Shown: positions 1,887 to 63,853 of the stretch, piece by piece | Numbering within the stretch: the first letter of the stretch is position 1 | How the letters are laid out: each line of letters opens with the position of its first letter | Virus record (IMG/VR): IMGVR_UViG_3300029983_000007 | Coordinates: 124,001-188,000 of that record | Reading direction: 5' to 3' (one strand) | Length of the DNA stretch: 64,000 nt | The notes under the pieces: generated by a model | What the model was told of the DNA's origin: nothing | What the model saw: only the letters and a program-made list of their open reading frames with translations | The model's database searches: none | Position numbers and translations under genes: made by a program

Positions 1887-3653
1887 TTAATCAATTGAAA
1901 CGTTATTAACAGGCTTGTATTTGTTAATTAATGTTTCTCTATTACTAAATCCTCTGCTTCTTGGACTCATGATAACAATAGGAGAACTTTGAGCAGCTTT
2001 ATAAACTGAAATTTTCATTTTACTAACAGCAAAATTTACTTGCTCATTCCATTGTTTGATATCATATTTATAAACTTCCTCCATTTTAGGGAAATAGTCA
2101 ATATTTAATGAATGATTTTTATAATCTAAAATCAAATCATCTCGTGTTTTTCTATCTCTAATTAAAGATGCACATATTCCACTTTGCACCCAATAATCAA
2201 TAGGATCTTCATTTGCATCAGGTAATTCTGCTGCAGGTTTAAATTTACCATTATATAAATCAAAAGGTACAATCTCATCTTTATACAATTCTGTGTTTAT
2301 ATAATCTGACAATTCATACAATTCAACTTTTGTCAAATCACCAATAATAGCATGAACACCAATTGATCCAATATCATGAAATGAAGCCCAGCCAAGAACT
2401 ATTTCAGTGTGATTTCCAGTTGATACAATACCACTTTTAAATCTGTGAGTATCTTCTAATCCTAACACAGTTCTTAGTACAGCATGAATTGATGCTTTAC
2501 CTGTATCACTTAATTCAGGTGAATCACTCATATGAATTTTATCAACTTCTAATATTTCATTGACTGTTGATTGAATAGGTTGCCAGTATGTATTTGTTCC
2601 TAATTTTTCGTCTAATTGAGTTACATAATCTTTTGATTTAGTATTCAATGAAGATGGATTAGATATAAATATTGTATGTTCTTTACCCATAGCACGATAA
2701 ACTAATGCTGCTACAATAGATGAATCAAGTCCTCCTGACACATGAACTTGAGCATTTTCAATTCCTGATAATTTGAAAAATTCTTTTTGTTCAAATAGAA
2801 TTGCATCAGTAATTTCTTTATATTTACTATCATCGCTACCTACTATTGGTTCACTTTTTTTTAGTCTGAATGTTTCAGTTGTTTCTTTAAATTTAGGTAG
2901 TTCTTTAACTAATCTACCATAACTATTATAGACAAGAGAACCTCCATCGTAAATTATAATATTTTTAACAATATCTCCACAACCAACAGAATTTAATGAT
3001 ACTACTGGAACCATATTATTTTTTGCAATTTTAGAAAATAAATTTTTTCTGATTTTTTGCTTACCATAATAAAAATATGATTGATTAGGTATAATTAAAA
3101 TTTCTGCCCCCATATTAACCATTTCTTGTGGTATGTCTCTATGATGGTTCATAAACCAAGAATCTTCACAAATTGGTATTCCTATGATAGTTTTACCTGC
3201 ATTTGGTAAGTAAACTTCAAAAACTTTAGTTTCAGTTCCTTCTGTGAAATATTTTCTATCTTCATGATGATCTGTATCTGCTAACAATTGTTTATCATAG
3301 GTACGAATTCCATCTTTATCAATTACCGCTACTGAATTTTTCAATATAGGAAATCCATTTCTGTTATTACCATGTGATGAAACGAATCCAACAATAATAA
3401 TACCATGTAATCCTATTTCTTTTCTGAATTTTTGAATTTCTTTCAATTTTGTGATTTGATCACGAATGAAATCTTCTCTATCCCAAAGAGAACCACAACA
3501 ATAACCACTAATAGCAGTTTCTGGGAAAACTGATATATCTACAAAATTTTTACTATCTAATTTTAAACAATCCATAATTTTTTGGGTATTTCCAATTAAA
3601 TCACCAGTGACTGTATTAATCTGATGTAACGAAATATTTGCATTTTCAATCAT
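1887..3653 (-). CDS. nadE: Glutamine-dependent NAD+ synthetase
   Basis: Nitrilase-fold glutaminase triad motifs (FPE, YDKQLL, ICED) plus synthetase motifs SGGLDS, STGNHTE, GDLTK and PAAEL. Confidence 0.92.
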   Translation of the reverse strand: MIENANISLHQINTVTGDLIGNTQKIMDCLKLDSKNFVDISVFPETAISGYCCGSLWDREDFIRDQITKLKEIQKFRKEIGLHGIIIVGFVSSHGNNRNGFPILKNSVAVIDKDGIRTYDKQLLADTDHHEDRKYFTEGTETKVFEVYLPNAGKTIIGIPICEDSWFMNHHRDIPQEMVNMGAEILIIPNQSYFYYGKQKIRKNLFSKIAKNNMVPVVSLNSVGCGDIVKNIIIYDGGSLVYNSYGRLVKELPKFKETTETFRLKKSEPIVGSDDSKYKEITDAILFEQKEFFKLSGIENAQVHVSGGLDSSIVAALVYRAMGKEHTIFISNPSSLNTKSKDYVTQLDEKLGTNTYWQPIQSTVNEILEVDKIHMSDSPELSDTGKASIHAVLRTVLGLEDTHRFKSGIVSTGNHTEIVLGWASFHDIGSIGVHAIIGDLTKVELYELSDYINTELYKDEIVPFDLYNGKFKPAAELPDANEDPIDYWVQSGICASLIRDRKTRDDLILDYKNHSLNIDYFPKMEEVYKYDIKQWNEQVNFAVSKMKISVYKAAQSSPIVIMSPRSRGFSNRETLINKYKPVNNVSID

Positions 3654-20908: not shown

Positions 20909-21984
20909 GTGATAATAGATAAATTGTATAATATTAGTATAGGTTCTAAAAATTTTAATCATTTCAAAAAATTAAATTATAATTGTAAAGTTGGTGAAAC
21001 AATAGAAGTGAATTCAATAGATTTGATGAGTAATTGTAAAGTAATTGTTAATGCGAAATGTGATATTTGTGGGACAGAAACATCATTGGAATATAGATCA
21101 TATTTAAAAAATGTTAGTAAATATCCTATATATTGCTGTAGTACATCATGTTCAAAAATAAAAGAAGATAAAACAAAAAAGGAAATATATGGTGAAGAAT
21201 TTCAGAAAATAAGAGTCCAAAACATGAAGAAAACAAATAAGAAGAGATATGGAAATGAATGCTCATCTCAGATATTTAGAAATGAAAAAAATCAAGAAAC
21301 TTTTATAACTGAATTAAAAGAATTATATAAAAATAATGACTTTGATTATTCAAAAGTAAATTATATTAATAATTATACTAAAGTAGAAATAATATGTAAA
21401 GATCACGGCTCATTTGAAATAATACCTAATGCGTTATTAATAGGACAAGGATGTAAAAAATGTAATAAAGAAAGAATAAAAAATCAAGAATAAAAATATA
21501 TTTAGATAAATCAAATATTACACACAACAATAAATATGATTATTCTAAAGTTGATTATAATATACAAACAGAAAAAGTAACAATTATTTGTCCAATTCAT
21601 GGAGAATTTAAACAAATGATAAATCAACATTCAACTGGTCGTGGTTGCAAAAAATGTGGATATATTAACGTTAGATTAAAAAAATTGGAAATTATAGAAT
21701 CTAATTTTAAAAAAGGTTATCAAATAACTCCATATTTTAATCCTAATGCTTGTAAATTATTTGATGAAATTAGTAAAAAAGAAAATATATACATTCAACA
21801 TGCAATGAATGGAGGCGAATATCGTATAAAAGAATTAGGATATTGGATTGATGGATATGATATGAAAAATAATGTTGTATATGAATATGATGAAAAGGAA
21901 CATTTCATTAAAGGAATATTAAAGGAGAAAGATGTAGATAGACAAAAAGAAATTGAAAATTTTTTAGGTTGTACATTCATATGA
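20909..21984 (+). pseudogene. Frameshifted homing-endonuclease-like gene (CxxC finger, DUF723-like repeats, PD-(D/E)xK-like C-terminus)
   Basis: ORF1 (CDICG, FDYSKVNY...IICKDHG) stops at 21493. The -1 frame is open from 21469 (KYDYSKVDY...ICPIHGEF...YWIDGYD...VYEYDEKEH). One extra A in the A6 run at 21478-21483 would join the two. Confidence 0.7.
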
Positions 21985-25890: not shown

Positions 25891-26231
25891 TATATGTTAA
25901 ATTTATTTGCTTCTAATTCATATTCATTCATATTTACTGTACCCATAAATTTATAATTATTAATTTCATAAAAATTATCAGTCAGATTATCTTCATATTC
26001 TGTCCAACCCCATTTATCATCTTCAACATTACCTCGATTTGGATTATATCCAATAAATATATATTTTGAATTAATACTCCTATTACTCAAAAAACCTTTA
26101 ATTCTATTTTCGCTACACTTTATTTGTCTCAAAGAGTCTTCAAATCTTTCATCAGTTGACATTAGCCAATGTCTACATGAATCATATAAATTAGAGTCAA
26201 AAACATCTTCAAATATTTTAATATACTTCAT
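25890..26231 (-). CDS. Tag-class small protein, paralog 3 of 3
   Basis: MKYIKIFE...HWLMSTDERF...ANKFNI. Confidence 0.75.
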   Translation of the reverse strand: MKYIKIFEDVFDSNLYDSCRHWLMSTDERFEDSLRQIKCSENRIKGFLSNRSINSKYIFIGYNPNRGNVEDDKWGWTEYEDNLTDNFYEINNYKFMGTVNMNEYELEANKFNI

Positions 26232-27868
26232 ATTTTAAATTTTAGGTTACCAGAGTCGTATATTCTGTATATTTTTCTATCAATCATAATTTGATGTTCA
26301 GTTTTATTTTTATCAAAACCTTGCTTGACTAATAAATCTTTTCTGAAGTTAAATCTATGATGTCTGATTCCGTCAATTATATAGTAATAATTTGGTTGTG
26401 TTTTTCCGTCATATTTAAATCCAAGAGTTTCATATAATTTACCTTGACTAAAACTTCTATCAGCGTATGTGGATATTTCATTTGGTTTATAATTTTTCAT
26501 GAAATATTTAAATAATCTTGATGCACCGCCAACAACGTTAGTATTTAATTTATTACAGAAACGTAATAGTTCATATTCACCTTTATTTGTTGATTTTTTA
26601 CCCATTGCTATACGTCTATTACCGAAAGTCATCAGACTAACTAATTCATCATTATAAAATAATCCAATTTTAACTTTTGATCCGACAAATCCTTGAATGT
26701 GATTGGTATCAAGAAATTCTCTAACCAACTTATTGTCAATTATTTCTTTAATTTCGCATTTTCTCGCATATAATTTAATAGTATTTTTACCTAATTTATT
26801 TAATATTATTGATTTAACGATTTCTTGTTTATATAACCAATCATCTTCCCATATATGAATTAATTGTATTCCTTGTTTTTCACACAACTCAGTTTTATTT
26901 AAATGATAATTATTTTCTTTGTGCAATTCATTATGCCAATATACTCCATTGAATTCAAACGCTATTTTTAAATCTGGTATATAAATATCTAATTCATATG
27001 GATTTAAAATAGTTCTATCATTGTATATTATATTAATCTTACAATTGTTTTTTATAAAAATGTGTAATTGAGTTTCATATCCACTATTTGAAAATGATCC
27101 AATTGGATTACATACAGTACAAATAACAGTCTTAGAAATTTTCCTATTATATAAAATATTAGCTACAATATTAAAATTGTGATTTTTTTTACAATCACAT
27201 TTAAATGTATAAATATTATCAATCAATGATATAATATTATTATTTTCATATAATTTTAATATTTTTTTAGTCCTATTTTTTTTTATTTTATCTTTTATTT
27301 CTAAAAATGAAAATGGATTATCAAACCCATGATTTTTTAAATTTGTTTCTTTTATTTTTTCTTTTATTTTTTCTGACTGCATTAGAATACCATTAAATCT
27401 GTCATTCATTGTGTTTTTGAATTTTAATTTAATTTCATTTGATTGCATAGGATTTAATACCTTATAATTATTGAAAGTGGTTTTTTCTTTTTTTAATTTA
27501 ATATCATTTAATTTAGAAACGTTATCAACTCCATATTTTTCTAAACAAGTTCTTTTTGATTTTACTGAATTATTATAATTTTCAACTCCATATTTTTCTA
27601 AGTTGGTTTTTTTAGATTTAAAATTGAAGCATTTTTTACAAGTGTAAATATCATATTTTGATATATTTTTATTATATTTTTGATAAGTTATGATTTTTTC
27701 ATTGTCACAAATGTCACATTTTACCAACAATTTAACCGCACTATTGATTGGTAATTGTGATATCAGTATTTCAATATTATCTCCACTTGATATGTTATTA
27801 TACCATTTTTTATAGTGAGATATTGTTTTATTACTAACTTTTATGTTTATTGTATTTTCTACTATCAT
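26228..27868 (-). CDS. Free-standing homing-endonuclease-like protein (KYGV repeats, PD-(D/E)xK core, Hef-like C-terminus)
   Basis: VKCDIC, LEKYGVEN repeats, ELDIYIPDLKIAFEFNGVYWH, LIHIWEDDW, YELLRFC, YADRS; paralog of 45687-47573. Confidence 0.75.
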   Translation of the reverse strand: MIVENTINIKVSNKTISHYKKWYNNISSGDNIEILISQLPINSAVKLLVKCDICDNEKIITYQKYNKNISKYDIYTCKKCFNFKSKKTNLEKYGVENYNNSVKSKRTCLEKYGVDNVSKLNDIKLKKEKTTFNNYKVLNPMQSNEIKLKFKNTMNDRFNGILMQSEKIKEKIKETNLKNHGFDNPFSFLEIKDKIKKNRTKKILKLYENNNIISLIDNIYTFKCDCKKNHNFNIVANILYNRKISKTVICTVCNPIGSFSNSGYETQLHIFIKNNCKINIIYNDRTILNPYELDIYIPDLKIAFEFNGVYWHNELHKENNYHLNKTELCEKQGIQLIHIWEDDWLYKQEIVKSIILNKLGKNTIKLYARKCEIKEIIDNKLVREFLDTNHIQGFVGSKVKIGLFYNDELVSLMTFGNRRIAMGKKSTNKGEYELLRFCNKLNTNVVGGASRLFKYFMKNYKPNEISTYADRSFSQGKLYETLGFKYDGKTQPNYYYIIDGIRHHRFNFRKDLLVKQGFDKNKTEHQIMIDRKIYRIYDSGNLKFKI

Positions 27869-45678: not shown

Positions 45679-47585
45679 AAAAGTTTATGTTAATAACAAA
45701 AGAAATTGAAATTTTCAATAAAATTATACCTATATCTGAATTGTCTTTACATAGTCATAAAAAAATTGTGGTTAAATGTGATAATTGTGATACTATTAAA
45801 GAGATTACATATCAATCTTATAATAATTCAACTAATAATAATTCAACTGATTATTATTGTCATAATAAGGAATGCATTAATAAAAAAAGAATAATATCAA
45901 CAAGAGAAAAATATGGTGTTGATAATGTTTCTCAATTAAAAATGATAAAAGATAAAAAAATACAAACATGTTTAGATAATTTTGGTGTTAAATTTCCAAC
46001 TCAATCAGATAAAGTAAAATCGAAAAGTAAAAATACAAATTTAGAGAAATATGGAGTAGAATGGCAAACTCAATCTAATAATTTTAAAGAAAAAAGTAAA
46101 ATTACAAATTTAGAAAGATATGGAACTGAAAGCGCAATGCAATCTGATATAATTAAAAATAAGGTTAAAAATACTTGTTTAATTAAATATGATGTAGATT
46201 CATATATGAAAACATATGATTTTAAAAATAAATCTATAATCACAAATTTGAAAAATTTTGGAGTAAAATATCCATCTCAAAATAATCAGATTCAAGATAA
46301 AATAAAAAAAACTAATATTATAAGATATGGTGTAGAAAGACCAACTCAAAATGAAAAAATAAAAATAAAAATAAAAAATTCATATCAGTATAATTTTGGT
46401 GTAAATAATATTAAAAATGTAAAAAATTTGAAAGATAAATTACAAAAAACTAATTTATACAGATATAATACTGATTTTTATTCTCAGTCTGAACAATATA
46501 AAAAAATAGTTAAAAATAGAAAAATTATTTTATTATCCAAAAAATACAACTTAAAAATTGAAGATATAGTAGATGATAATATTGTATTGGTTTGTGATAA
46601 ATGTGATAATAAATTTGTCGCTACATATCAACAATTATACAATAGATTTCTTTATAATACTCCTTTGTGTACTATTTGTAATCCGATTGAATCTTTGTCT
46701 TATGTTGAAACAGAATTTCAAGAATTTATTTCAAAAAATTATAATGGAAAAATATTTTTAAACAATAGAAAAATAATTAAGCCTAATGAATTAGATGTTT
46801 ATTTACCTGAATTAAATTTAGCGTTTGAATTTAATGGATTATATTGGCATTCCGAACGTTATAAAGATGATAATTATCATTTAATAAAAACTGAAATGTG
46901 TGAAAAATTAGATATACAATTGTTGCATATTTGGGAAGATGATTGGAATTTCAAAAAAGATATAGTAAAATCAATAATATTAAATAAATTAGGTAAAAAT
47001 AGTAATAAAATATATGCCAGAAAATGTAAAATAAAAGAAATAAGTGATACTAAATTACTTAGACATTTTCTTGATACTAATCATATTCAAGGTTATATAA
47101 ATTCAAAAATTAATATAGGTTTATTTTATAATGATGAATTATTTAGCCTGATGACTTTTGGTAGCAAACGAAAGATTATGAATTCTTTGTCCAATGATGA
47201 TGAATTTGAAATCTATAGATTTTGTAATAAATTGAATACTAATATTATAGGTGGAGCTAGTAAATTGTTTTCTTTTTTTATTAAAAATTATAATTTTTCA
47301 AAAATCATAAGCTATTCTGATAGATCATATTTTAATGGTAATAATTATTTAAAATTAGGATTTAAATTTTATAGTAATACGTCTCCAAATTATTATTATA
47401 CAATAAAAGGTAAAAGAGAATATAGATTTAAATTTAGAAAAGATATATTAATTAAGGAAGGTTATGATTCTAATAAGACTGAACAACAAATTATGTTAGA
47501 TAGAAATATTTTTAGAATATATAATTCTGGTAATTTGAAATTTATATATGAAAAAAGAAAAAGTTTATGTTAATAACAAAAGAAA
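45679..47585 (+). mobile_element. Endonuclease gene bracketed by 27-bp direct repeats
   Basis: aaaagtttatgttaataacaaaagaaa at 45679-45705 and 47559-47585. Confidence 0.55.
45687..47573 (+). CDS. Free-standing homing-endonuclease-like protein (KYGV repeats, PD-(D/E)xK core, Hef-like C-terminus)
   Basis: About 9 [KR][YF]GV-type repeats; ELDVYLPELNLAFEFNGLYWH; LLHIWEDDW; YSDRS. Confidence 0.75.
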   Translation: MLITKEIEIFNKIIPISELSLHSHKKIVVKCDNCDTIKEITYQSYNNSTNNNSTDYYCHNKECINKKRIISTREKYGVDNVSQLKMIKDKKIQTCLDNFGVKFPTQSDKVKSKSKNTNLEKYGVEWQTQSNNFKEKSKITNLERYGTESAMQSDIIKNKVKNTCLIKYDVDSYMKTYDFKNKSIITNLKNFGVKYPSQNNQIQDKIKKTNIIRYGVERPTQNEKIKIKIKNSYQYNFGVNNIKNVKNLKDKLQKTNLYRYNTDFYSQSEQYKKIVKNRKIILLSKKYNLKIEDIVDDNIVLVCDKCDNKFVATYQQLYNRFLYNTPLCTICNPIESLSYVETEFQEFISKNYNGKIFLNNRKIIKPNELDVYLPELNLAFEFNGLYWHSERYKDDNYHLIKTEMCEKLDIQLLHIWEDDWNFKKDIVKSIILNKLGKNSNKIYARKCKIKEISDTKLLRHFLDTNHIQGYINSKINIGLFYNDELFSLMTFGSKRKIMNSLSNDDEFEIYRFCNKLNTNIIGGASKLFSFFIKNYNFSKIISYSDRSYFNGNNYLKLGFKFYSNTSPNYYYTIKGKREYRFKFRKDILIKEGYDSNKTEQQIMLDRNIFRIYNSGNLKFIYEKRKSLC

Positions 47586-52919: not shown

Positions 52920-52950
52920 AAAAAAGAGAGATTTTAAATCTCTCTTTTTT
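52920..52950. terminator. Bidirectional terminator
   Basis: aaaaaagagagattt-t-aaatctctctttttt. Confidence 0.75.
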
Positions 52951-53289: not shown

Positions 53290-55194
53290 TTATTTTATTT
53301 TTTTCTTTAATGAATCAAGTTCTTGTAACCACATATCAGTTTCAGTAGTAGATAATATTTTATCTATCTCAATTTTTATTTTTTCGTAAGTGTCTTTTAA
53401 CTCAGATAATTTTTCTGTTGATAAACTAATTAATGATATATTAATTAAATAATCATAACTATCTTTATACATTTCAATTTTGTTATTTTCAATCTGTGAT
53501 ATTATTTTTTCTTTTGTTTTATTTTCAAAAATTATATCTTTTTTTAATACACAATTGATAAATTTCATTTTATTTATAATATACTTTTTCTGCTCTTCAA
53601 ATTTGTATAATATATTTTTCTTTCTCAAATTATAAAAATTTGTTCTTATTTTAACAAAATCATCAATTATATCATATTGATCTTTATAAAAATATATTTT
53701 ACCTTCTTCATTGAACAAATTCATATTATTAATACTTATATAAGAATCAAGATTGAATTTTTTAATTATCATTTCATCTGTTAATTCACTCAATATATCT
53801 TCTGATATAGTAATTACAATGTTTATGCTATCATCTGTACAATAATTATCATAATCTTTGATGTATTTTTCATCTATGAGTTTATCTAAATATTCAAAGT
53901 ATTTATCATTCCACATCATTATTGGTAATTCTAAAATGCTTAGTTTATTTTTGCCTAATTTCTTAAATATTCCTCTTGATATATATCTTTTATTATTTAA
54001 ATCAGGAATAATTTCACCTTTGAATCCATTATACCAAGGTATTAACTCTATGTTTTTCTTACTCTTTTTCAAATAATTTTGAATATATGTTATTACATCA
54101 GTAGGATTGAATGATGGTATGTTAGTTGACCAACCAGTACCTATACCTTCAGCATTATTTATTAATATCATAGGTATTATTGGTATATAATTTTTTGGCT
54201 CTATTTTGTATCCATCATCAATAAGATATTCTAATAAATCATCATCTTCTGATTTGAATATATATTTAGTTATTTCGTTTAATTTGGTGAATATATATCT
54301 AGGAGCAGATGCGTCTTTTCCTCCTTTTAATCTGGATCCAAATTGTCCTACTGGTTCCAACAGATTTAAGTTGTTTGATCCTATGAAATTTTGAGACATT
54401 GAAATTATTGCTTGTTCTAAAGATGTTGATCCATTATGATATGCTGATAAACTTATAATATCACCACATAATTGGCTTACTTTAATTTCATTTTTAAAAT
54501 TCTTTTTTAGTAAAGTGTAAAGTATTTTTCTTTGAGATGGTTTTAATCCATCTATCATTGATGGTATTGATCTTATATTATCCGCCATACTAAACTCTAT
54601 GAATTCATTATTGAAAAACGAGTCATATGTTTGTTTTGTTTTAAATTTATCAAAATCTACATTAGACTTATAATTTAATAACCATTCTTTCCTATCCTCT
54701 ACTCTTTTTTTGTTGAATGCCAAATCTATCATATCTCTTTCTTTGATTATATCAGATGAGTTGAATTTTATTAAATGCTTATTTAAATCTTTAAAAAATA
54801 ATTTAATCTCAAATGGCTCCAAAGTACCAAGACCTTTTAACCATTTTAAGTGCCATTCAGAATATTCTGTTTTGCTTTTCCATTTTTGATAATCATATGT
54901 ATTATAAAAATATTGTGTTTTACCCTTTTTTGTAGCTTTTACTACTGGGGTAATAAATTGATATAAAAACTCAAGTTGTAATAATTCGGGCCAGTATTTA
55001 TCAAAAAAATTTAGTAGAAGCCCAGATATGTGAGAACCGTCACAATTATGAACCAATATATTATCTATTTTATTTTTAGATATAAAAAACGAATTATCAT
55101 CTTCTACTTTAATGTCATACATTATAGTATCTTTGCTTTCTTTTTTTATTTCATCAATATTTAATATTTCATAATCATTTAGATTTATTTTCAT
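53290..55194 (-). CDS. Type IIA topoisomerase C-half carrying a 50-aa C-intein at its N-terminus
   Basis: MYDIKVEDDNSFF...ILVHN/CDGSHISGLL; KGLGT, RSIPSMIDGLKPSQRK, catalytic ASAPRYIFT, GIGTGWST. Confidence 0.92.
   Translation of the reverse strand: MKINLNDYEILNIDEIKKESKDTIMYDIKVEDDNSFFISKNKIDNILVHNCDGSHISGLLLNFFDKYWPELLQLEFLYQFITPVVKATKKGKTQYFYNTYDYQKWKSKTEYSEWHLKWLKGLGTLEPFEIKLFFKDLNKHLIKFNSSDIIKERDMIDLAFNKKRVEDRKEWLLNYKSNVDFDKFKTKQTYDSFFNNEFIEFSMADNIRSIPSMIDGLKPSQRKILYTLLKKNFKNEIKVSQLCGDIISLSAYHNGSTSLEQAIISMSQNFIGSNNLNLLEPVGQFGSRLKGGKDASAPRYIFTKLNEITKYIFKSEDDDLLEYLIDDGYKIEPKNYIPIIPMILINNAEGIGTGWSTNIPSFNPTDVITYIQNYLKKSKKNIELIPWYNGFKGEIIPDLNNKRYISRGIFKKLGKNKLSILELPIMMWNDKYFEYLDKLIDEKYIKDYDNYCTDDSINIVITISEDILSELTDEMIIKKFNLDSYISINNMNLFNEEGKIYFYKDQYDIIDDFVKIRTNFYNLRKKNILYKFEEQKKYIINKMKFINCVLKKDIIFENKTKEKIISQIENNKIEMYKDSYDYLINISLISLSTEKLSELKDTYEKIKIEIDKILSTTETDMWLQELDSLKKKIK
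55045..55194 (-). other. Split intein, C-fragment (IntC)
   Basis: Block F YDIKV, block G VHN, followed by +1 Cys. Confidence 0.9.
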
Positions 55195-55345
55195 CTTTAT
55201 TCATATCTTTTTTTATTAAGTGCTCAATATATTTTGATTTGTTTATATTATTATCTTCACAAATTTCATCTAATATATTATCTAATTCAATATTTATAGA
55301 TACTGATAATGTTTTCTTTTTGTCTGTTATTGTTGGTCTTCCCAT
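55175..55345 (-). CDS. 56-aa ribbon-helix-helix protein with GRP hook (not in ORF track)
   Basis: MGRPTITDKKKTLSVSINIELDNILDEICEDNNINKSKYIEHLIKKDM...; overlaps the topo C-half start. Confidence 0.75.
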   Translation of the reverse strand: MGRPTITDKKKTLSVSINIELDNILDEICEDNNINKSKYIEHLIKKDMNKDENKSK

Positions 55346-55359
55346 TGTGTTTTTGTTTT

Positions 55360-55425
55360 TATATATAAAATATTAACTAATTTGTTTGAAAATAGATAAA
55401 AATGAAACTTTTTTATTTATATATA
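55360..55425. promoter_or_regulatory. Divergent promoter region of the RHH cassette
   Basis: Minus strand AAAC-N18-TATATA at 55360-55387; plus strand TTTATATATA at 55416-55425. Confidence 0.6.
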
Positions 55426-55444
55426 CTATAAAAATGCTAAGAAT

Positions 55445-55606
55445 ATGAAAAAACCAATCACAAAAAGAAAAGTTTCTATCTCAATAAATAGTGAAGTATA
55501 TAATTATATTGAAGATAGATTTGAAAATAAATCTAAATATATTGAATATTTAATATATCAAGATATATTAAAATGTGGCAAATTAAAAAAAGATATAATA
55601 TTATGA
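55445..55606 (+). CDS. 53-aa ribbon-helix-helix protein (not in ORF track)
   Basis: MKKPITKRKVSISINSEVYNYIEDRFENKSKYIEYLIYQDIL...; ATGA-coupled to the endonuclease. Confidence 0.75.
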   Translation: MKKPITKRKVSISINSEVYNYIEDRFENKSKYIEYLIYQDILKCGKLKKDIIL

Positions 55607-56430
55607 TATTAGATACTGAAATATTATTTAATGTGAGTAATAAAAATAAAGCACATTTGATATGCAAAGGTTATGATGTGACTCACAAAGATGTTATAAT
55701 TAAAGTTGAAGATTTGCCTACATATAGTCATTATAAAATAAAAGTAAAATGCGATATATGTGGAACTGAAAAATATTTAGGAAATCATAAATATATGAAA
55801 AACACAAGACTTAATACTAAAGATTATTGTTGTTGTCAAAAATGTGGAGTTAATAAATTACTTGATACATTTAAAGAAAATTACGGGTGTATAAGTAGTC
55901 AACATCCTAATATCAAATTAAAGCAAGAGAAAACAAATATCGAAAGATATGGTAGTAAATCTTGTCAATCAAATAAAGAAATTAAACAAAAATCATATGA
56001 TACTATGATAAAAAAATATGGTGTAAAATATTCATTACAGAATAATGAAATAAAAAAAAAGTTTATGTTAAAAATAGATGATACTGTTAAAAAAACTAAT
56101 ATTACAAAAGTTCAAAGAGGAGTAATGGTAGATTATGATAATTTTAGTTCATTTAAAGATTATAGAAAATTAGTTGATATAGAAACAAGAAGAAACAAAA
56201 AACTATTATATGAAGAATGGAATGGACTTGATTTTTATGATAATGAATATATTGGTGAAAATTTAAATTTAAATTATAGAGATAAATTATATCCATCTAT
56301 AGATCATAAAATATCAATATTGAATGGATTTTTAGATGATATTGATCCTTATAGTATTGGTAATATTACGAATTTGTGTATAACAACAAGAACAAATAAC
56401 TCAAAGAAGAATTCTAAAAATGTGTTCTAA
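55603..56430 (+). CDS. HNH-like homing endonuclease lying antisense between the split-intein halves
   Basis: Start ATG 55603; VKCDICG, YG repeats, PSIDHKIS...NLCITTRTNNSKK. Confidence 0.75.
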   Translation: MILDTEILFNVSNKNKAHLICKGYDVTHKDVIIKVEDLPTYSHYKIKVKCDICGTEKYLGNHKYMKNTRLNTKDYCCCQKCGVNKLLDTFKENYGCISSQHPNIKLKQEKTNIERYGSKSCQSNKEIKQKSYDTMIKKYGVKYSLQNNEIKKKFMLKIDDTVKKTNITKVQRGVMVDYDNFSSFKDYRKLVDIETRRNKKLLYEEWNGLDFYDNEYIGENLNLNYRDKLYPSIDHKISILNGFLDDIDPYSIGNITNLCITTRTNNSKKNSKNVF

Positions 56431-56442
56431 ATATTATTAAAT

Positions 56443-56476
56443 AAAAGAAAGAGATAAATAATTATCTCTTTCTTTT
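56443..56476. terminator. Bidirectional terminator between the endonuclease and the topo N-half
   Basis: aaaagaaagagataa-ataa-ttatctctttctttt. Confidence 0.75.
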
Positions 56477-58264
56477 TAATATTTTATCAGTAATTAATAT
56501 TTCTTTGACTTTTACTAATATAATTTCATTGTTTCTTAATATTGGAATCTCATGATTTTCACTAAATGTATATTCATATCCATTGATATTTAATTTTATT
56601 ATATTAGTCTTGTGAGTTTCAATTATATTGAGTATTTTTTTCCATTCATTGTTGTGTGTTAAAACTTCATCGTCATAATTAATATCTTTTATTGCTACAT
56701 ATCCTCTTTTAGTTAGAACTAACGTATTTTCTTCTATACAATCAGCATCTGTCATCATTATAACTTTACCGTATCTTAATGTTCTTGTTGATGTGTATTG
56801 TTTACCAAATTCTAATCCTAATATTTTTATAATTGAAGTAATTTCATCGTTTTCTCTCATTTTTTGTATAGAAACATCCCTTACATTCAATGGTTTACCC
56901 TTAAGAGGGTATATTCCATAATAGTCATTTCCAACAACTGATAATCCTGCACGAGCTGTTGATTTTGCTGAATCTCCTTCAGTTAGTATTAATCCACATT
57001 TCATGCTATGTGGTTGCTTACCTGCCATATTAGCATCATCAAGCTTCGCTATTTTAACTTTAATTTTCTGATTATTCTGAGTTGATTTCTTAGCATCTTG
57101 TAATTCTTTGAATGATGCAAAATTTACTATGTCATTTTTTATTTGAGATGACATAAGTTTTTTGATAAATGAATCTGAAACAGTTACATCTTTGATGATT
57201 TCAGTTATCATTCTTGTAGTTAGATTTTCTTTTGTTTGTGTTTCAAATGATGGATTAGGAATTTTACAACTAAGAAATAAAAATAAATGATTTTTGATCA
57301 TTGATTGTTTAACGCTTGTTGATTTTATTTTATCATCAAGTGATTTGGTGATTTGATTAGTTATGTAATTAACATGAGTACCTCCAATATGAGTAGATAT
57401 TCCATTTACCATTGATACTTGTTGAAACATATCATTAGGTGTGCGTGCTATACCGACTTCCCAGTTCTCATTTATTTTTTCGTAGAAGAACTCTTCATCA
57501 TCATTGATAAACATCTTCATGTAATCTTTAAATGACTTGATAGGTATTAATACATCATTATAGTAGACTTTAACTCCAGTGCTATAAGCTGCAATGTCAA
57601 TAGCTCGTTTTAAAAATATTGATTGAATTTCATCTGTTATTTCAGTTAGATTAAATTTTTCAAAATCTGGATAATATGTAATTTTTGTGTAATTTTTGTC
57701 TGATGTAGTTATTTTTGGCTTAGTTTTATCAGACATATTATTGGTGAATGTTTGAATGTATTTATGCTTACCATCTGCAGTTTCAATTGTAAATTTCTTT
57801 GAGAATATGTTAGTTGTTTTTATTCCAATTCCATGTGTACCACCAACCATCCTTTTATCATCGTCCGTGAAATTCTCCCCCGTGAGCAAATTTCCGAAAA
57901 TCAACTCACACACATAAATTTTATGTTCTTTGTGCATAACAATAGGTACTCCTGGTCCGTCGTTTTCAATTGTTATGTGGTCTTTATCTACGTTTATCTT
58001 GATGTATTTGACTTGACCATCTGTTCTGATGTAATGATCTGATGCATTGGTTAATGCTTCATCGAATAGTTTAATAAATCCTGCATTATAATTTACTTCT
58101 TTATATACAAATTTGTTGTCTTTAATTTCATTAATATCTTCAAATACATACATTTTGGTTGGTTCAGTATATATATTTCCAATATACATTCCTGGTTTTT
58201 TTAATACGTGTTCAATTGGTGTTAATTTCTTATATCTATCCTCTATTGTTTTTTTATTCATCAA
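56462..58264 (-). CDS. Type IIA topoisomerase N-half (GHKL ATPase plus part of TOPRIM) ending in a 92-aa N-intein
   Basis: HVLKKPGMYIG, DEALTNA.D, NDGPGVP, GGTHGIG.K, LTEGDSAK, PLKGKPLNV, IMMTDAD/CIEENT. Confidence 0.92.
   Translation of the reverse strand: MMNKKTIEDRYKKLTPIEHVLKKPGMYIGNIYTEPTKMYVFEDINEIKDNKFVYKEVNYNAGFIKLFDEALTNASDHYIRTDGQVKYIKINVDKDHITIENDGPGVPIVMHKEHKIYVCELIFGNLLTGENFTDDDKRMVGGTHGIGIKTTNIFSKKFTIETADGKHKYIQTFTNNMSDKTKPKITTSDKNYTKITYYPDFEKFNLTEITDEIQSIFLKRAIDIAAYSTGVKVYYNDVLIPIKSFKDYMKMFINDDEEFFYEKINENWEVGIARTPNDMFQQVSMVNGISTHIGGTHVNYITNQITKSLDDKIKSTSVKQSMIKNHLFLFLSCKIPNPSFETQTKENLTTRMITEIIKDVTVSDSFIKKLMSSQIKNDIVNFASFKELQDAKKSTQNNQKIKVKIAKLDDANMAGKQPHSMKCGLILTEGDSAKSTARAGLSVVGNDYYGIYPLKGKPLNVRDVSIQKMRENDEITSIIKILGLEFGKQYTSTRTLRYGKVIMMTDADCIEENTLVLTKRGYVAIKDINYDDEVLTHNNEWKKILNIIETHKTNIIKLNINGYEYTFSENHEIPILRNNEIILVKVKEILITDKILKRKR
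56465..56740 (-). other. Split intein, N-fragment (IntN)
   Basis: Block A CIEENTLV, GYVAIKDI..DDEVLTH, block B FSENH, then stop. Confidence 0.9.
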
Positions 58265-58286: not shown

Positions 58287-58314
58287 TATATATCTTAAAA
58301 ATTATGTAAAGTTT
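58287..58314 (-). promoter_or_regulatory. Putative middle promoter AAAC-N18-TATATA
   Basis: Upstream of the topo N-half. Confidence 0.65.
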
Positions 58315-58372: not shown

Positions 58373-58687
58373 TTAAATATTATTTAATTTTTCTATCTTC
58401 AATTTTCTACATATTTTTTGATGGTATGATTCTATAAATTTTTCAAAATCTTCAAAATTTAGAAATTCTTGTTTAAGTTCAACATGAGGATAAGGTGCTG
58501 TACTATATATGTTTTTATGAAAACATATTACTTCATTAGAGTATTCATCCATATATGAATTTATGTTTATATAGCCACCATTTTCTCTTATGATATAATA
58601 ATTTGAACATCTAAGTTTATAGCCAATTGATGTTATAAGTTTTAATACACGGTCATCAATGTAATCTTTGCTTAAATGATCATTCAT
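58373..58687 (-). CDS. Small protein, RxxKL tag class, paralog of the next gene
   Basis: KLI.SIGYK, ENGGYININ, EFLNF; ends RKLKIEKLNNI. Confidence 0.7.
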   Translation of the reverse strand: MNDHLSKDYIDDRVLKLITSIGYKLRCSNYYIIRENGGYININSYMDEYSNEVICFHKNIYSTAPYPHVELKQEFLNFEDFEKFIESYHQKICRKLKIEKLNNI

Positions 58688-58983
58688 AATAAGTTTTTTA
58701 ATTTTAGTTTTCTGAATATTCTTTTATGATATTCTTTTATGAATGTTTCAAAATTTTTAAAATTTAAAAATTCTTTTGAATAAACTTTGATTTCATTTGC
58801 TATTTGGTAATATTTACTGAATGATATAATTTTATCACCATCATTTAGTACATAAAAATTTATATTTATATATCCATTTTCTTCAAATAACGTAAATTTA
58901 TCAAATCTATTTTTATAACCTATAGACTCAATTAATTTGATGCATTTTTTGTCGTAATATTCTCTATATCTAAAATCAATCAT
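58684..58983 (-). CDS. Small protein, RxxKL tag class
   Basis: Ends RKLKLKNLL; AAAC-N18-TATATA at 59014-59041. Confidence 0.7.
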   Translation of the reverse strand: MIDFRYREYYDKKCIKLIESIGYKNRFDKFTLFEENGYININFYVLNDGDKIISFSKYYQIANEIKVYSKEFLNFKNFETFIKEYHKRIFRKLKLKNLL

Positions 58984-59233
58984 GTGATGTTATTATGCTT
59001 ATAATTAAAAATTTATATATTATTATTTTGATGACATGTTTTTGATATTTGTTAAATAAATGACTAAAATATATAATAAATATGTTTTTATTTTTTTTAT
59101 TGAAATAGTTTATTTACTTTTGTGAAGTAATTGAATTATAATAATATTTATAATAATATTATTAATTAGTTTTTAATTTAAATTATTATGTATATCTTTG
59201 TATTGTAATATAAAAACTTAATAATGAATTTTT

Positions 59234-63432: not shown

Positions 63433-63609
63433 TTACTCATTATTATCATTTTTTTTGTTATCTTTGTTTATTAAGTATGTAATATATTCTGATTTTGATA
63501 AATTATTTTCAATTAAATAAGTTTCTAATTTTTCATTTAACTCTTTGTCAATAGTAATACTCATCGTTGTTTTTTTATTTTCCTTTTTTGGTCTACCTAC
63601 GTCTGACAT
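63433..63609 (-). CDS. 58-aa ribbon-helix-helix protein with GRP hook (not in ORF track)
   Basis: MSDVGRPKKENKKTTMSITIDKELNEKLETYLIENNLSKSEYITYLINKD...; homolog of 55175-55345. Confidence 0.75.
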   Translation of the reverse strand: MSDVGRPKKENKKTTMSITIDKELNEKLETYLIENNLSKSEYITYLINKDNKKNDNNE

Positions 63610-63688: not shown

Positions 63689-63853
63689 ATGAAGAAAATT
63701 AAAACTAAAGTAGCAATATCAATCGCAATAGATAAAGGAATGAATGAATATCTATCAGAAAACTTTGAAAATAAGTCAAAATATATTGAGCATTTGATAT
63801 ATAAAGATTTAGTTGAAAATAATATAATAGAAGAAAATAAATATAAAATGTAA
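63689..63853 (+). CDS. 54-aa ribbon-helix-helix protein (not in ORF track)
   Basis: MKKIKTKVAISIAIDKGMNEYLSENFENKSKYIEHLIYKDL...; homolog of 55445-55606. Confidence 0.75.
   Translation: MKKIKTKVAISIAIDKGMNEYLSENFENKSKYIEHLIYKDLVENNIIEENKYKM

Follow-up and report, generated by a model that had tools for sequence, protein, structure and literature searches.

The stretch of DNA considered here (the window) comprises 64,000 nt, bases 124001–188000 of the 330,208 bp IMG/VR virus contig IMGVR_UViG_3300029983_000007, and has a G+C content of approximately 23 %. The locus examined within it, centred on an insert at 55195–56461, lies, by its sequence, inside a topoisomerase II gene of the 'fractured' kind, carried by a huge phage from peat. 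According to the best explanation, the two halves of this gene carry a split intein and their products would be joined by trans-splicing, whilst the downstream half (C-half) would be transcribed from a promoter within the inserted endonuclease cassette and modulated by a pair of ribbon–helix–helix (RHH) proteins; for this explanation as a whole we estimate a probability of approximately 0.6. An earlier note on the same DNA had recognised the two topoisomerase halves, but had not named the key fact, the split intein at their junction.

The broken gene and its intein

The gene is made up of the following parts, in order of translation:

56741–58261, minus strand: topoisomerase II N-extein, aa 1–507; Pfam HATPase_c, DNA_gyraseB and Toprim; boundary checked
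56465–56740, minus strand: intein N-part, 92 aa, with Cys1 and block B S-x-x-H; Pfam Hint_2, E = 2e-4
55045–55194, minus strand: intein C-part, 50 aa, ending ..VHN; TIGR01443; boundary checked
53290–55044, minus strand: topoisomerase II C-extein including the stop codon; rest of Toprim and the DNA-cleavage/A-subunit domain; Pfam TOPRIM_C (2e-31) and DNA_topoisoIV (4e-105)

The upstream half (N-half; 56462–58261, minus strand, 599 aa) contains the ATPase, the transducer and Toprim as far as ..MTDAD, and its open reading frame (ORF) then ends in frame with the N-part of the intein, the stop codon being at 56462–56464. The C-half (53290–55194, minus strand, 634 aa) opens with the C-part and resumes at CDGSHI.. 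with the remainder of Toprim, followed by TOPRIM_C and the cleavage domain. Both halves lie on the same strand in the parental order, and are collinear with the unbroken gene of 1096 aa in a related locus (L011), to which the N-extein displays 77 % identity. The site of the intein, between ..TDAD and CDGSHI.., is the Toprim metal-binding motif. With regard to assembly, independent peat samples yield identical contigs across 54079–57107, and therefore the arrangement is not an assembly artefact; the stretch was found in at least 12 peat metagenome runs.

The catalytic residues of a class 1 intein are present (C1, S-E-N-H, ..VHN and, immediately after the C-part as the first residue of the C-extein, C+1) and are conserved in relatives, and the C-part starts at the same point in 11 related loci. 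It scores 15.7 bits with TIGR01443, against a cut-off of 15.6, and the N-part scores 18.9 bits with TIGR01445, below the cut-off of that family. Amongst solved structures, the N-part is closest to the gp41-1 split intein (6qaz; E = 0.016); a search of solved structures with the C-part alone returned spurious low-complexity matches only. When the two parts were predicted as a complex they scored 0.89, versus 0.00 for the best control, with three runs sharing at least 95 % of contacts and a partner predicted local distance difference test (pLDDT) value of at least 83; in calibration, 51 of 78 solved complexes attained the mark applied, compared with 2 of 108 mismatched pairs. Association of the parts into a single Hint fold is predicted in this way, although, as similar solved complexes exist, the result indicates likeness rather than binding. 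Their charges are also complementary: the last 25 aa of the N-part carry +5 and the C-part carries −4. As the halves carry a split intein, their products are most likely joined by protein trans-splicing.

Two other fates of the halves need to be weighed against this. That the gene was destroyed by the insertion and is now decaying is scarcely credible: nothing beyond the interruption itself speaks for it, each half is a full-length open frame and retains all domains, the halves are conserved across at least 11 split loci at 48–78 % identity, and the identical arrangement recurs in several samples. It is also very improbable that the halves associate via their intein parts and function without ligation, as in Aeh1 NrdA and T4 gp39/gp60. 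Two accounts describe split phage enzymes that can work unligated (PMC3045599; bioRxiv 10.1101/2022.08.31.505936), and in this lineage, as we ourselves read the motif, Asn stands in place of the block F His. Nevertheless, no split relative, over a range of 44–76 % identity, has lost Cys1, the block B His, the terminal HN or the +1 Cys, which speaks against this alternative.

Related loci and expression of the downstream half

Relatives were gathered from scans of viral and metagenome contigs, with L021 and L022 counted together and L013 being the same as L026. At the site of the intein they display the following forms:

L009–L012 and L016: no intein, unbroken gene (..SDMD/TDGSHI..)
L033–L037 and L040: contiguous intein of ~410–455 aa
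L031: contiguous mini-intein of ~145 aa
L027: split intein with the same break point, RHH pair and orthologous endonuclease
L013 (= L026) and L022: split intein, RHH pair and other endonucleases
L014, L023 and L025: split intein, one or more endonucleases but no RHH pair
L021 and L028: split intein, outward RHH gene directly before the C-half, where the contig ends
L024 and L029: split intein, insert without a recognised gene
L030: split intein, halves separated by just 66 nt, with no gene

The split form is found at this insertion site in 11 related loci, and across the relatives one Toprim motif presents all stages: empty, full intein, mini-intein, split intein with a cassette, and split intein without one. 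With such a natural series, the stages of the long-discussed route from intein to split intein can be compared directly. Three of the loci (L022:2–2397, L025:1151–1792 and L029:27–2620) harbour a second split intein in the same gene, at the ..LTEGD/SA.. Toprim motif, such that the enzyme is encoded there in three pieces; in the window this site is uninterrupted. The pairs at ..DAD/CDG.. and ..EGD/SA.. represent two new natural split inteins and are candidate protein-ligation tools.

In the window, the 1,267 nt between the intein parts (55195–56461) hold an RHH gene directed towards the C-half (RHH-A, minus strand), a control region, a second RHH gene (RHH-B, plus strand) and an endonuclease gene (plus strand) that faces the opposite way to the topoisomerase. 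These features, together with the flanking signals, are:

58287–58314, minus strand: weak TATATA-type site, the 'N-half promoter' of the earlier note; score 6.7; 22–25 nt before the N-half start
56443–56476, no strand assigned: perfect palindromic hairpin, terminator-like both ways; 15 bp stem, 4 nt loop
55603–56430, plus strand: predicted free-standing homing-endonuclease gene, 275 aa; phrog_12131 (5e-15), phrog_3339 and Pfam DUF7487
55445–55606, plus strand: RHH-B, 'inward' RHH gene and first of the endonuclease operon; paralogue of RHH-A, 'in' subfamily in alignment
55346–55444, no strand assigned: divergent control region, 99 bp, with two TATATATA-type sites and a 9 nt direct repeat
55175–55345, minus strand: RHH-A, 'outward' RHH gene; Pfam RepB-RCR_reg, 25.8 bits (cut-off 21)
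52920–52950, no strand assigned: second perfect palindromic hairpin, 14 bp stem, from the terminator scan; located where genes converge, downstream of the C-half unit

Amongst upstream words, TATATATA is the most strongly enriched on the contig, with 73 occurrences versus 6.0 expected in 215 upstream intergenic regions. It peaks 10–29 nt before start codons, with T-rich sequence before it, A-rich sequence after it and no conserved −35-like element, and in having a −10-like element only it resembles the T4 late-type promoter TATAAATA. A weight matrix places the TATATATA class before 52 genes and a second motif, TAnnTTTG (mostly TATCTTTG), before 61, with both occurring before only 2 (the sequence upstream of 1887–3653 in the window is an example of these motif classes); one or the other precedes 40–41 % of the genes that head a unit, versus 3 % of those in tight arrays. 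Judged by its single −10-like element, near-fixed distance and association with unit-head genes, the TATATATA class behaves as a putative promoter class. A Pfam search of large genes that carry it returned almost nothing beyond a collagen-like repeat in a protein of 1498 aa. A generic sigma-70 scan yielded 62 sites versus 59.5 expected, and in DNA of 23 % G+C therefore carries no information.

One site of this class, at 55367–55360 on the minus strand, is located 14 nt before RHH-A with a score of 17.2, on a contig where about 40 sites on both strands score at least 16; its mirror on the plus strand (55418–55425), 19 nt before RHH-B, scores 21.1. The former is the only strong coding-strand site between the halves. 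TATATA-type sites are likewise present shortly before the C-directed unit in 7 of the 11 distinct split loci (the window, L013, L014, L021/L022, L023, L025 and L027), with or without an RHH gene; in L023 and L025 they stand 18–20 nt before the C-half ATG, inside a divergent gap of 63–68 nt shared with the endonuclease gene. To this extent the suggestion of the earlier note that the cassette supplies the promoter of the C-half appears sound, as far as comparison of sequences can carry it. The composite motif that it had put forward, AAAC-N18-TATATA, occurs on the minus strand at exactly 55360–55387 and 58287–58314, and its TATATA core is enriched, but the composite is not above chance (4 in the window versus 1.85 expected, a count reached by 10 of 100 shuffles). 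Just 4 of 65 promoter-proximal TATATA sites have AAAC at N18, and the class is therefore not defined by it. The second of these positions had been taken as an N-half promoter of the same class, co-timed with that of the C-half. Whilst the hexamer is present there and 7 of 8 core bases match, the site is a poor one (6.7 versus 17.2), and co-timing is a weak proposition, even though 7 of the 10 loci compared have an ATATATA core ~21–34 nt ahead of the topoisomerase start. A third promoter-proximal AAAC-N18-TATATA is found at 59014–59041 (minus strand), 30 nt before the ORF at 58684–58983, which, together with another at 58373–58687, precedes the N-half on the same strand.

The last 20 nt of RHH-A overlap the start of the C-half, precisely as first described. 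An outward RHH gene abuts or overlaps this start in six loci (the window, L013, L021, L022, L027 and L028). In L021, L022 and L027 this gene is an orthologue of RHH-A immediately preceding the C-half, whose start it overlaps by 17 nt in the first two and by 11 nt in the third. The hairpin reported at 56443–56476 is also present, at the 31 nt gap between the convergent N-half (minus) and endonuclease (plus) genes, and its stem includes the N-half stop codon. Its folding energy on the minus strand is −19.5 kcal/mol, compared with −7.5 ± 2.5 in shuffles (z = −4.85), and on the plus strand −18.1 kcal/mol (z = −5.06). The terminator scan returned 3 sites in 6 kb versus 0.4 expected, and the hairpin at 52920–52950 is likely the end of a unit consisting of RHH-A, the C-half and a 112 aa ORF.

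On the preferred reading, the N-half would be transcribed from upstream, and its transcript and the converging one of RHH-B and the endonuclease would both terminate at the hairpin between them. A separate transcript of RHH-A, the C-half and the 112 aa ORF would start from the outward TATATATA-type site and end near 52920–52950; from it the C-half would be translated at the conserved ATG inside the end of RHH-A, in an A-rich context with no Shine–Dalgarno sequence. The two proteins would then associate via their intein parts and trans-splice into a topoisomerase of ~1,091 aa. The endonuclease would cut intein-less alleles, with the whole unit being copied in, and the RHH pair would bind the shared 99 bp region, limiting endonuclease expression and thereby also modulating the C-half; RHH control of the C-half is plausible. 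An outward promoter with a coupled small gene would explain in concrete terms why expression of the downstream half persists.

A number of observations weigh against this reading. The stem at 56443–56476 contains only 3 G–C pairs, the terminator scan rates it on the plus strand alone, where the T-tail is better, and no hairpin follows the N-half in L013 and L014, such that read-through from the N-half is possible. Due to the palindromic core of the promoter-like motif, its direction is deduced from the flanking sequence alone. The stretch was looked for in RNA runs, none of which contains it; and the C-terminal domain of the endonuclease has no Pfam or NCBIfam match, with a model pLDDT below 50 from residue 158.

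The main rival is read-through from the N-half, kept alive by L030 and by the weak minus-strand tail of the hairpin. In this scheme the C-half would derive mainly from a long upstream transcript that passes the hairpin and runs antisense across the endonuclease gene, with the outward site serving RHH-A or being of minor importance. L030 has the same split intein and no TATATA-type site in the 66 nt between its halves, from which it follows that co-transcription works in a relative. For the window this is nonetheless unlikely, as the perfect 15 bp stem is strong and ends in a T-run, a long transcript would collide with the convergent endonuclease operon, a top-ranking site of the promoter class stands just before RHH-A, and similar sites recur in the split loci as described above. 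Quite improbable is the further-reaching view, advanced in the earlier note, of an indispensable cassette that cannot simply be lost, with halves co-timed by matched AAAC-N18-TATATA promoters and a C-half governed by the RHH proteins. One can cite in its favour the sole strong promoter-class site before the C-half, the conserved overlap of RHH-A with the C-half (20, 17 and 11 nt), and the similar divergence from L027 of cassette proteins (57–72 % identity) and exteins (58–65 %), which indicates that the cassette has long been resident with the gene. Against it stand, however, the chance-level composite, an AAAC that does not belong to the class and the poor N-half site, and that the cassette cannot be lost is contradicted by the relatives: L030 has no gene between its halves, L009–L012 and L016 are unbroken and without an intein, L014, L023 and L025 lack the RHH pair, and other lineages have swapped or lost the cassette. 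The dependence of the C-half on a cassette promoter, as envisaged in the preferred reading, is local and contingent, and not an irreversible lock.

The mobile cassette and known fractured genes

In the model of RHH-A, two helices follow an extended N-terminus, and the best fold matches of the protein are CopA, Arc, CopG and ParD, with template modelling (TM) scores of 0.76/0.87 and weak E-values; from family match and model it is predicted to possess the RHH sequence family and beta–alpha–alpha fold. A comparison of RHH-A with annotated phages gave no match. RHH-B, which had no match in the Pfam scan, is assigned to the RHH family by paralogy only, being 49 % identical to RHH-A over 41 aa. In size, in having a basic N-terminal strand ahead of two helices, and in their location at a divergent promoter region, they resemble repressors of the CopG/Arc/antitoxin type. 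The control region between them contains an exact 9 nt direct repeat, ATAAAAATG, at 55396–55404 and 55428–55436 (32 nt apart), which could be a candidate operator half-site; chance in A+T-rich DNA is also possible.

The endonuclease ATG overlaps the RHH-B stop codon as ATGA, with the longest ORF beginning at 55573, and orthologues of 275–276 aa are found in L014 (69 % identity) and L027 (64 %). Its PHROG families predict a homing endonuclease; the HNH-like pattern 'DH..N..N' in the C-terminal domain is only our own reading. The family is modular, with a common N-terminal part (zinc ribbon plus DUF7487) and differing C-terminal domains. Free-standing paralogues elsewhere in the window, at 26228–27868 (minus), 45687–47573 (plus) and 21026–21493 (plus), share this N-terminal module and possess other C-terminal nuclease domains (PHROG homing endonuclease, E ~1e-127).

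The same design of outward RHH gene, control region, inward RHH gene and nuclease recurs in at least five further places on the contig, with nucleases of three different types. Amongst these copies the endonuclease-side TATATATA-type site is nearly invariant, and alignment separates the RHH proteins into two distinct subfamilies, 'out' and 'in'. Where a copy lies between genes, its outward RHH gene reads directly into the next gene, with a 32 nt gap in one and a 4 nt overlap in another. The presence of multiple copies, and of the same RHH pair with different nucleases, argues for mobility of the cassette. Tentatively, the RHH pair and endonuclease may constitute an undescribed mobile homing cassette, in which the outward promoter and RHH arm keep the downstream sequence from being silenced and the RHH subfamilies tie the two expressions together, although we consider this rather less probable than its converse. 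Were it so, the 3′ end of the RHH gene in this adapter arm would carry a start context for any downstream sequence, allowing the cassette to land inside an intein or beside genes and explaining how inteins become split yet stay functional; the route would have been used repeatedly in the same phage group, including in the three-piece topoisomerase genes with two split inteins.

With regard to known systems, the closest comparison is with the fractured genes gp41-1, gp41-8, NrdJ-1, IMPDH-1 and NrdA-2 from marine metagenomes (Dassa et al. 2009, PMC2677866). In the model proposed for these, an invading endonuclease element brings stop and termination signals upstream and start and transcription signals downstream; overlaps of 6–69 bp between the insert gene and the downstream part are also reported (PMC2677866). 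The notion of a C-half fed by the insert is already part of that model; it is reasonable, and is backed by the comparison of loci made here. As in those loci, the break in the window lies at the usual position of the endonuclease domain, the intein charges are complementary, in the pattern also given for gp41-1 (PMC2677866), and an insert gene overlaps the downstream start. The host gene differs, topoisomerase II being absent from the Dassa set (PMC2677866), and fractured genes are thus extended to topoisomerase II of huge phages. Furthermore, the endonuclease in the window is on the plus strand, opposite to the topoisomerase (minus), whereas the three genes of a Dassa locus are all on one strand; the overlap with the C-half start is made by RHH-A rather than by the 3′ end of the endonuclease; the insert includes a divergent RHH pair, whilst the Dassa loci have no RHH genes; the endonuclease family, with its zinc ribbon and DUF7487 repeats, is different; and, unlike in the Dassa loci, the same type of cassette also sits between ordinary genes on the contig. 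A text search of the literature for RHH genes together with free-standing homing endonucleases found no paper joining both, which is weak evidence of absence; the partnership of such regulators with homing-endonuclease genes appears to be unreported.

In T4, similarly, the free-standing homing-endonuclease cassette mobA/gene 60 splits topoisomerase II in the Toprim metal-binding motif, and relatives of that locus have swapped the endonuclease for other families or sometimes lost it (bioRxiv 10.1101/2022.08.31.505936), as is also seen amongst relatives of the window locus. T4 has no intein, however, and employs short added tails, a 50 nt translational bypass and unligated parts, whilst the window has a split intein and no bypass was seen in it; one homing intein is mentioned in a metagenomic relative of the T4 locus (bioRxiv 10.1101/2022.08.31.505936). 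In Aeh1, an essential phage gene is again split by a free-standing endonuclease gene (nrdA/mobE; PMC3045599; PMC2677866), and the three genes have separate regulatory regions with the endonuclease restrained (PMC2677866). Unlike the window, Aeh1 has no intein and no RHH genes, and its genes are all on one strand and co-transcribed. Cyanobacterial DnaE shares with the window a naturally split class-1 intein that joins the halves of an essential replication enzyme, but its halves are far apart in the genome, with no associated endonuclease (PMC2677866).

One further copy of the cassette lies between ordinary genes within the window, with RHH genes at 63433–63609 (minus, outward) and 63689–63853 (plus, inward); its nuclease, of another type (432 aa), starts at 63853 and runs off the window. 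Outside the window, at 70152–70364 of the contig, an ORF of 70 aa lies downstream of another cassette with an RHH pair and an HNH nuclease. By eye it resembles the C-terminal portion of an acetyltransferase, and the cassette may have truncated this gene.

Source contig and host

Read depth, as judged from contigs of the DNA runs, is reduced across 54100–57000. This might reflect a co-occurring relative, ~10 % divergent, with another insert or none, whose contigs break far from the intein borders. Joints listed in the same contigs have short sides of 21–26 nt only, and were not used.

CheckV estimates the contig to be 46 % complete. The best annotated-phage matches of both topoisomerase halves are two 'uncultured phage' records of 735,411 bp, at 52 % identity. 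Phages of more than 634 kb are predicted to infect Bacteroidetes, the largest genome in that set being 735 kb (Al-Shayeb et al. 2020, PMC7162821). Start codons on the contig are preceded by A-rich leaders in which Shine–Dalgarno-like words are depleted, and the word TATCTTTG is enriched in upstream regions (26 seen versus 2.2 expected) and fits TAnnTTTG, the −7 promoter consensus of Bacteroides (PMC4747536). These features agree with a Bacteroidota-type host, and the phage probably infects a member of the Bacteroidota. The presence of two upstream motif classes, alongside the lack of Shine–Dalgarno use, would fit such a host together with a separate, phage-specific promoter class.

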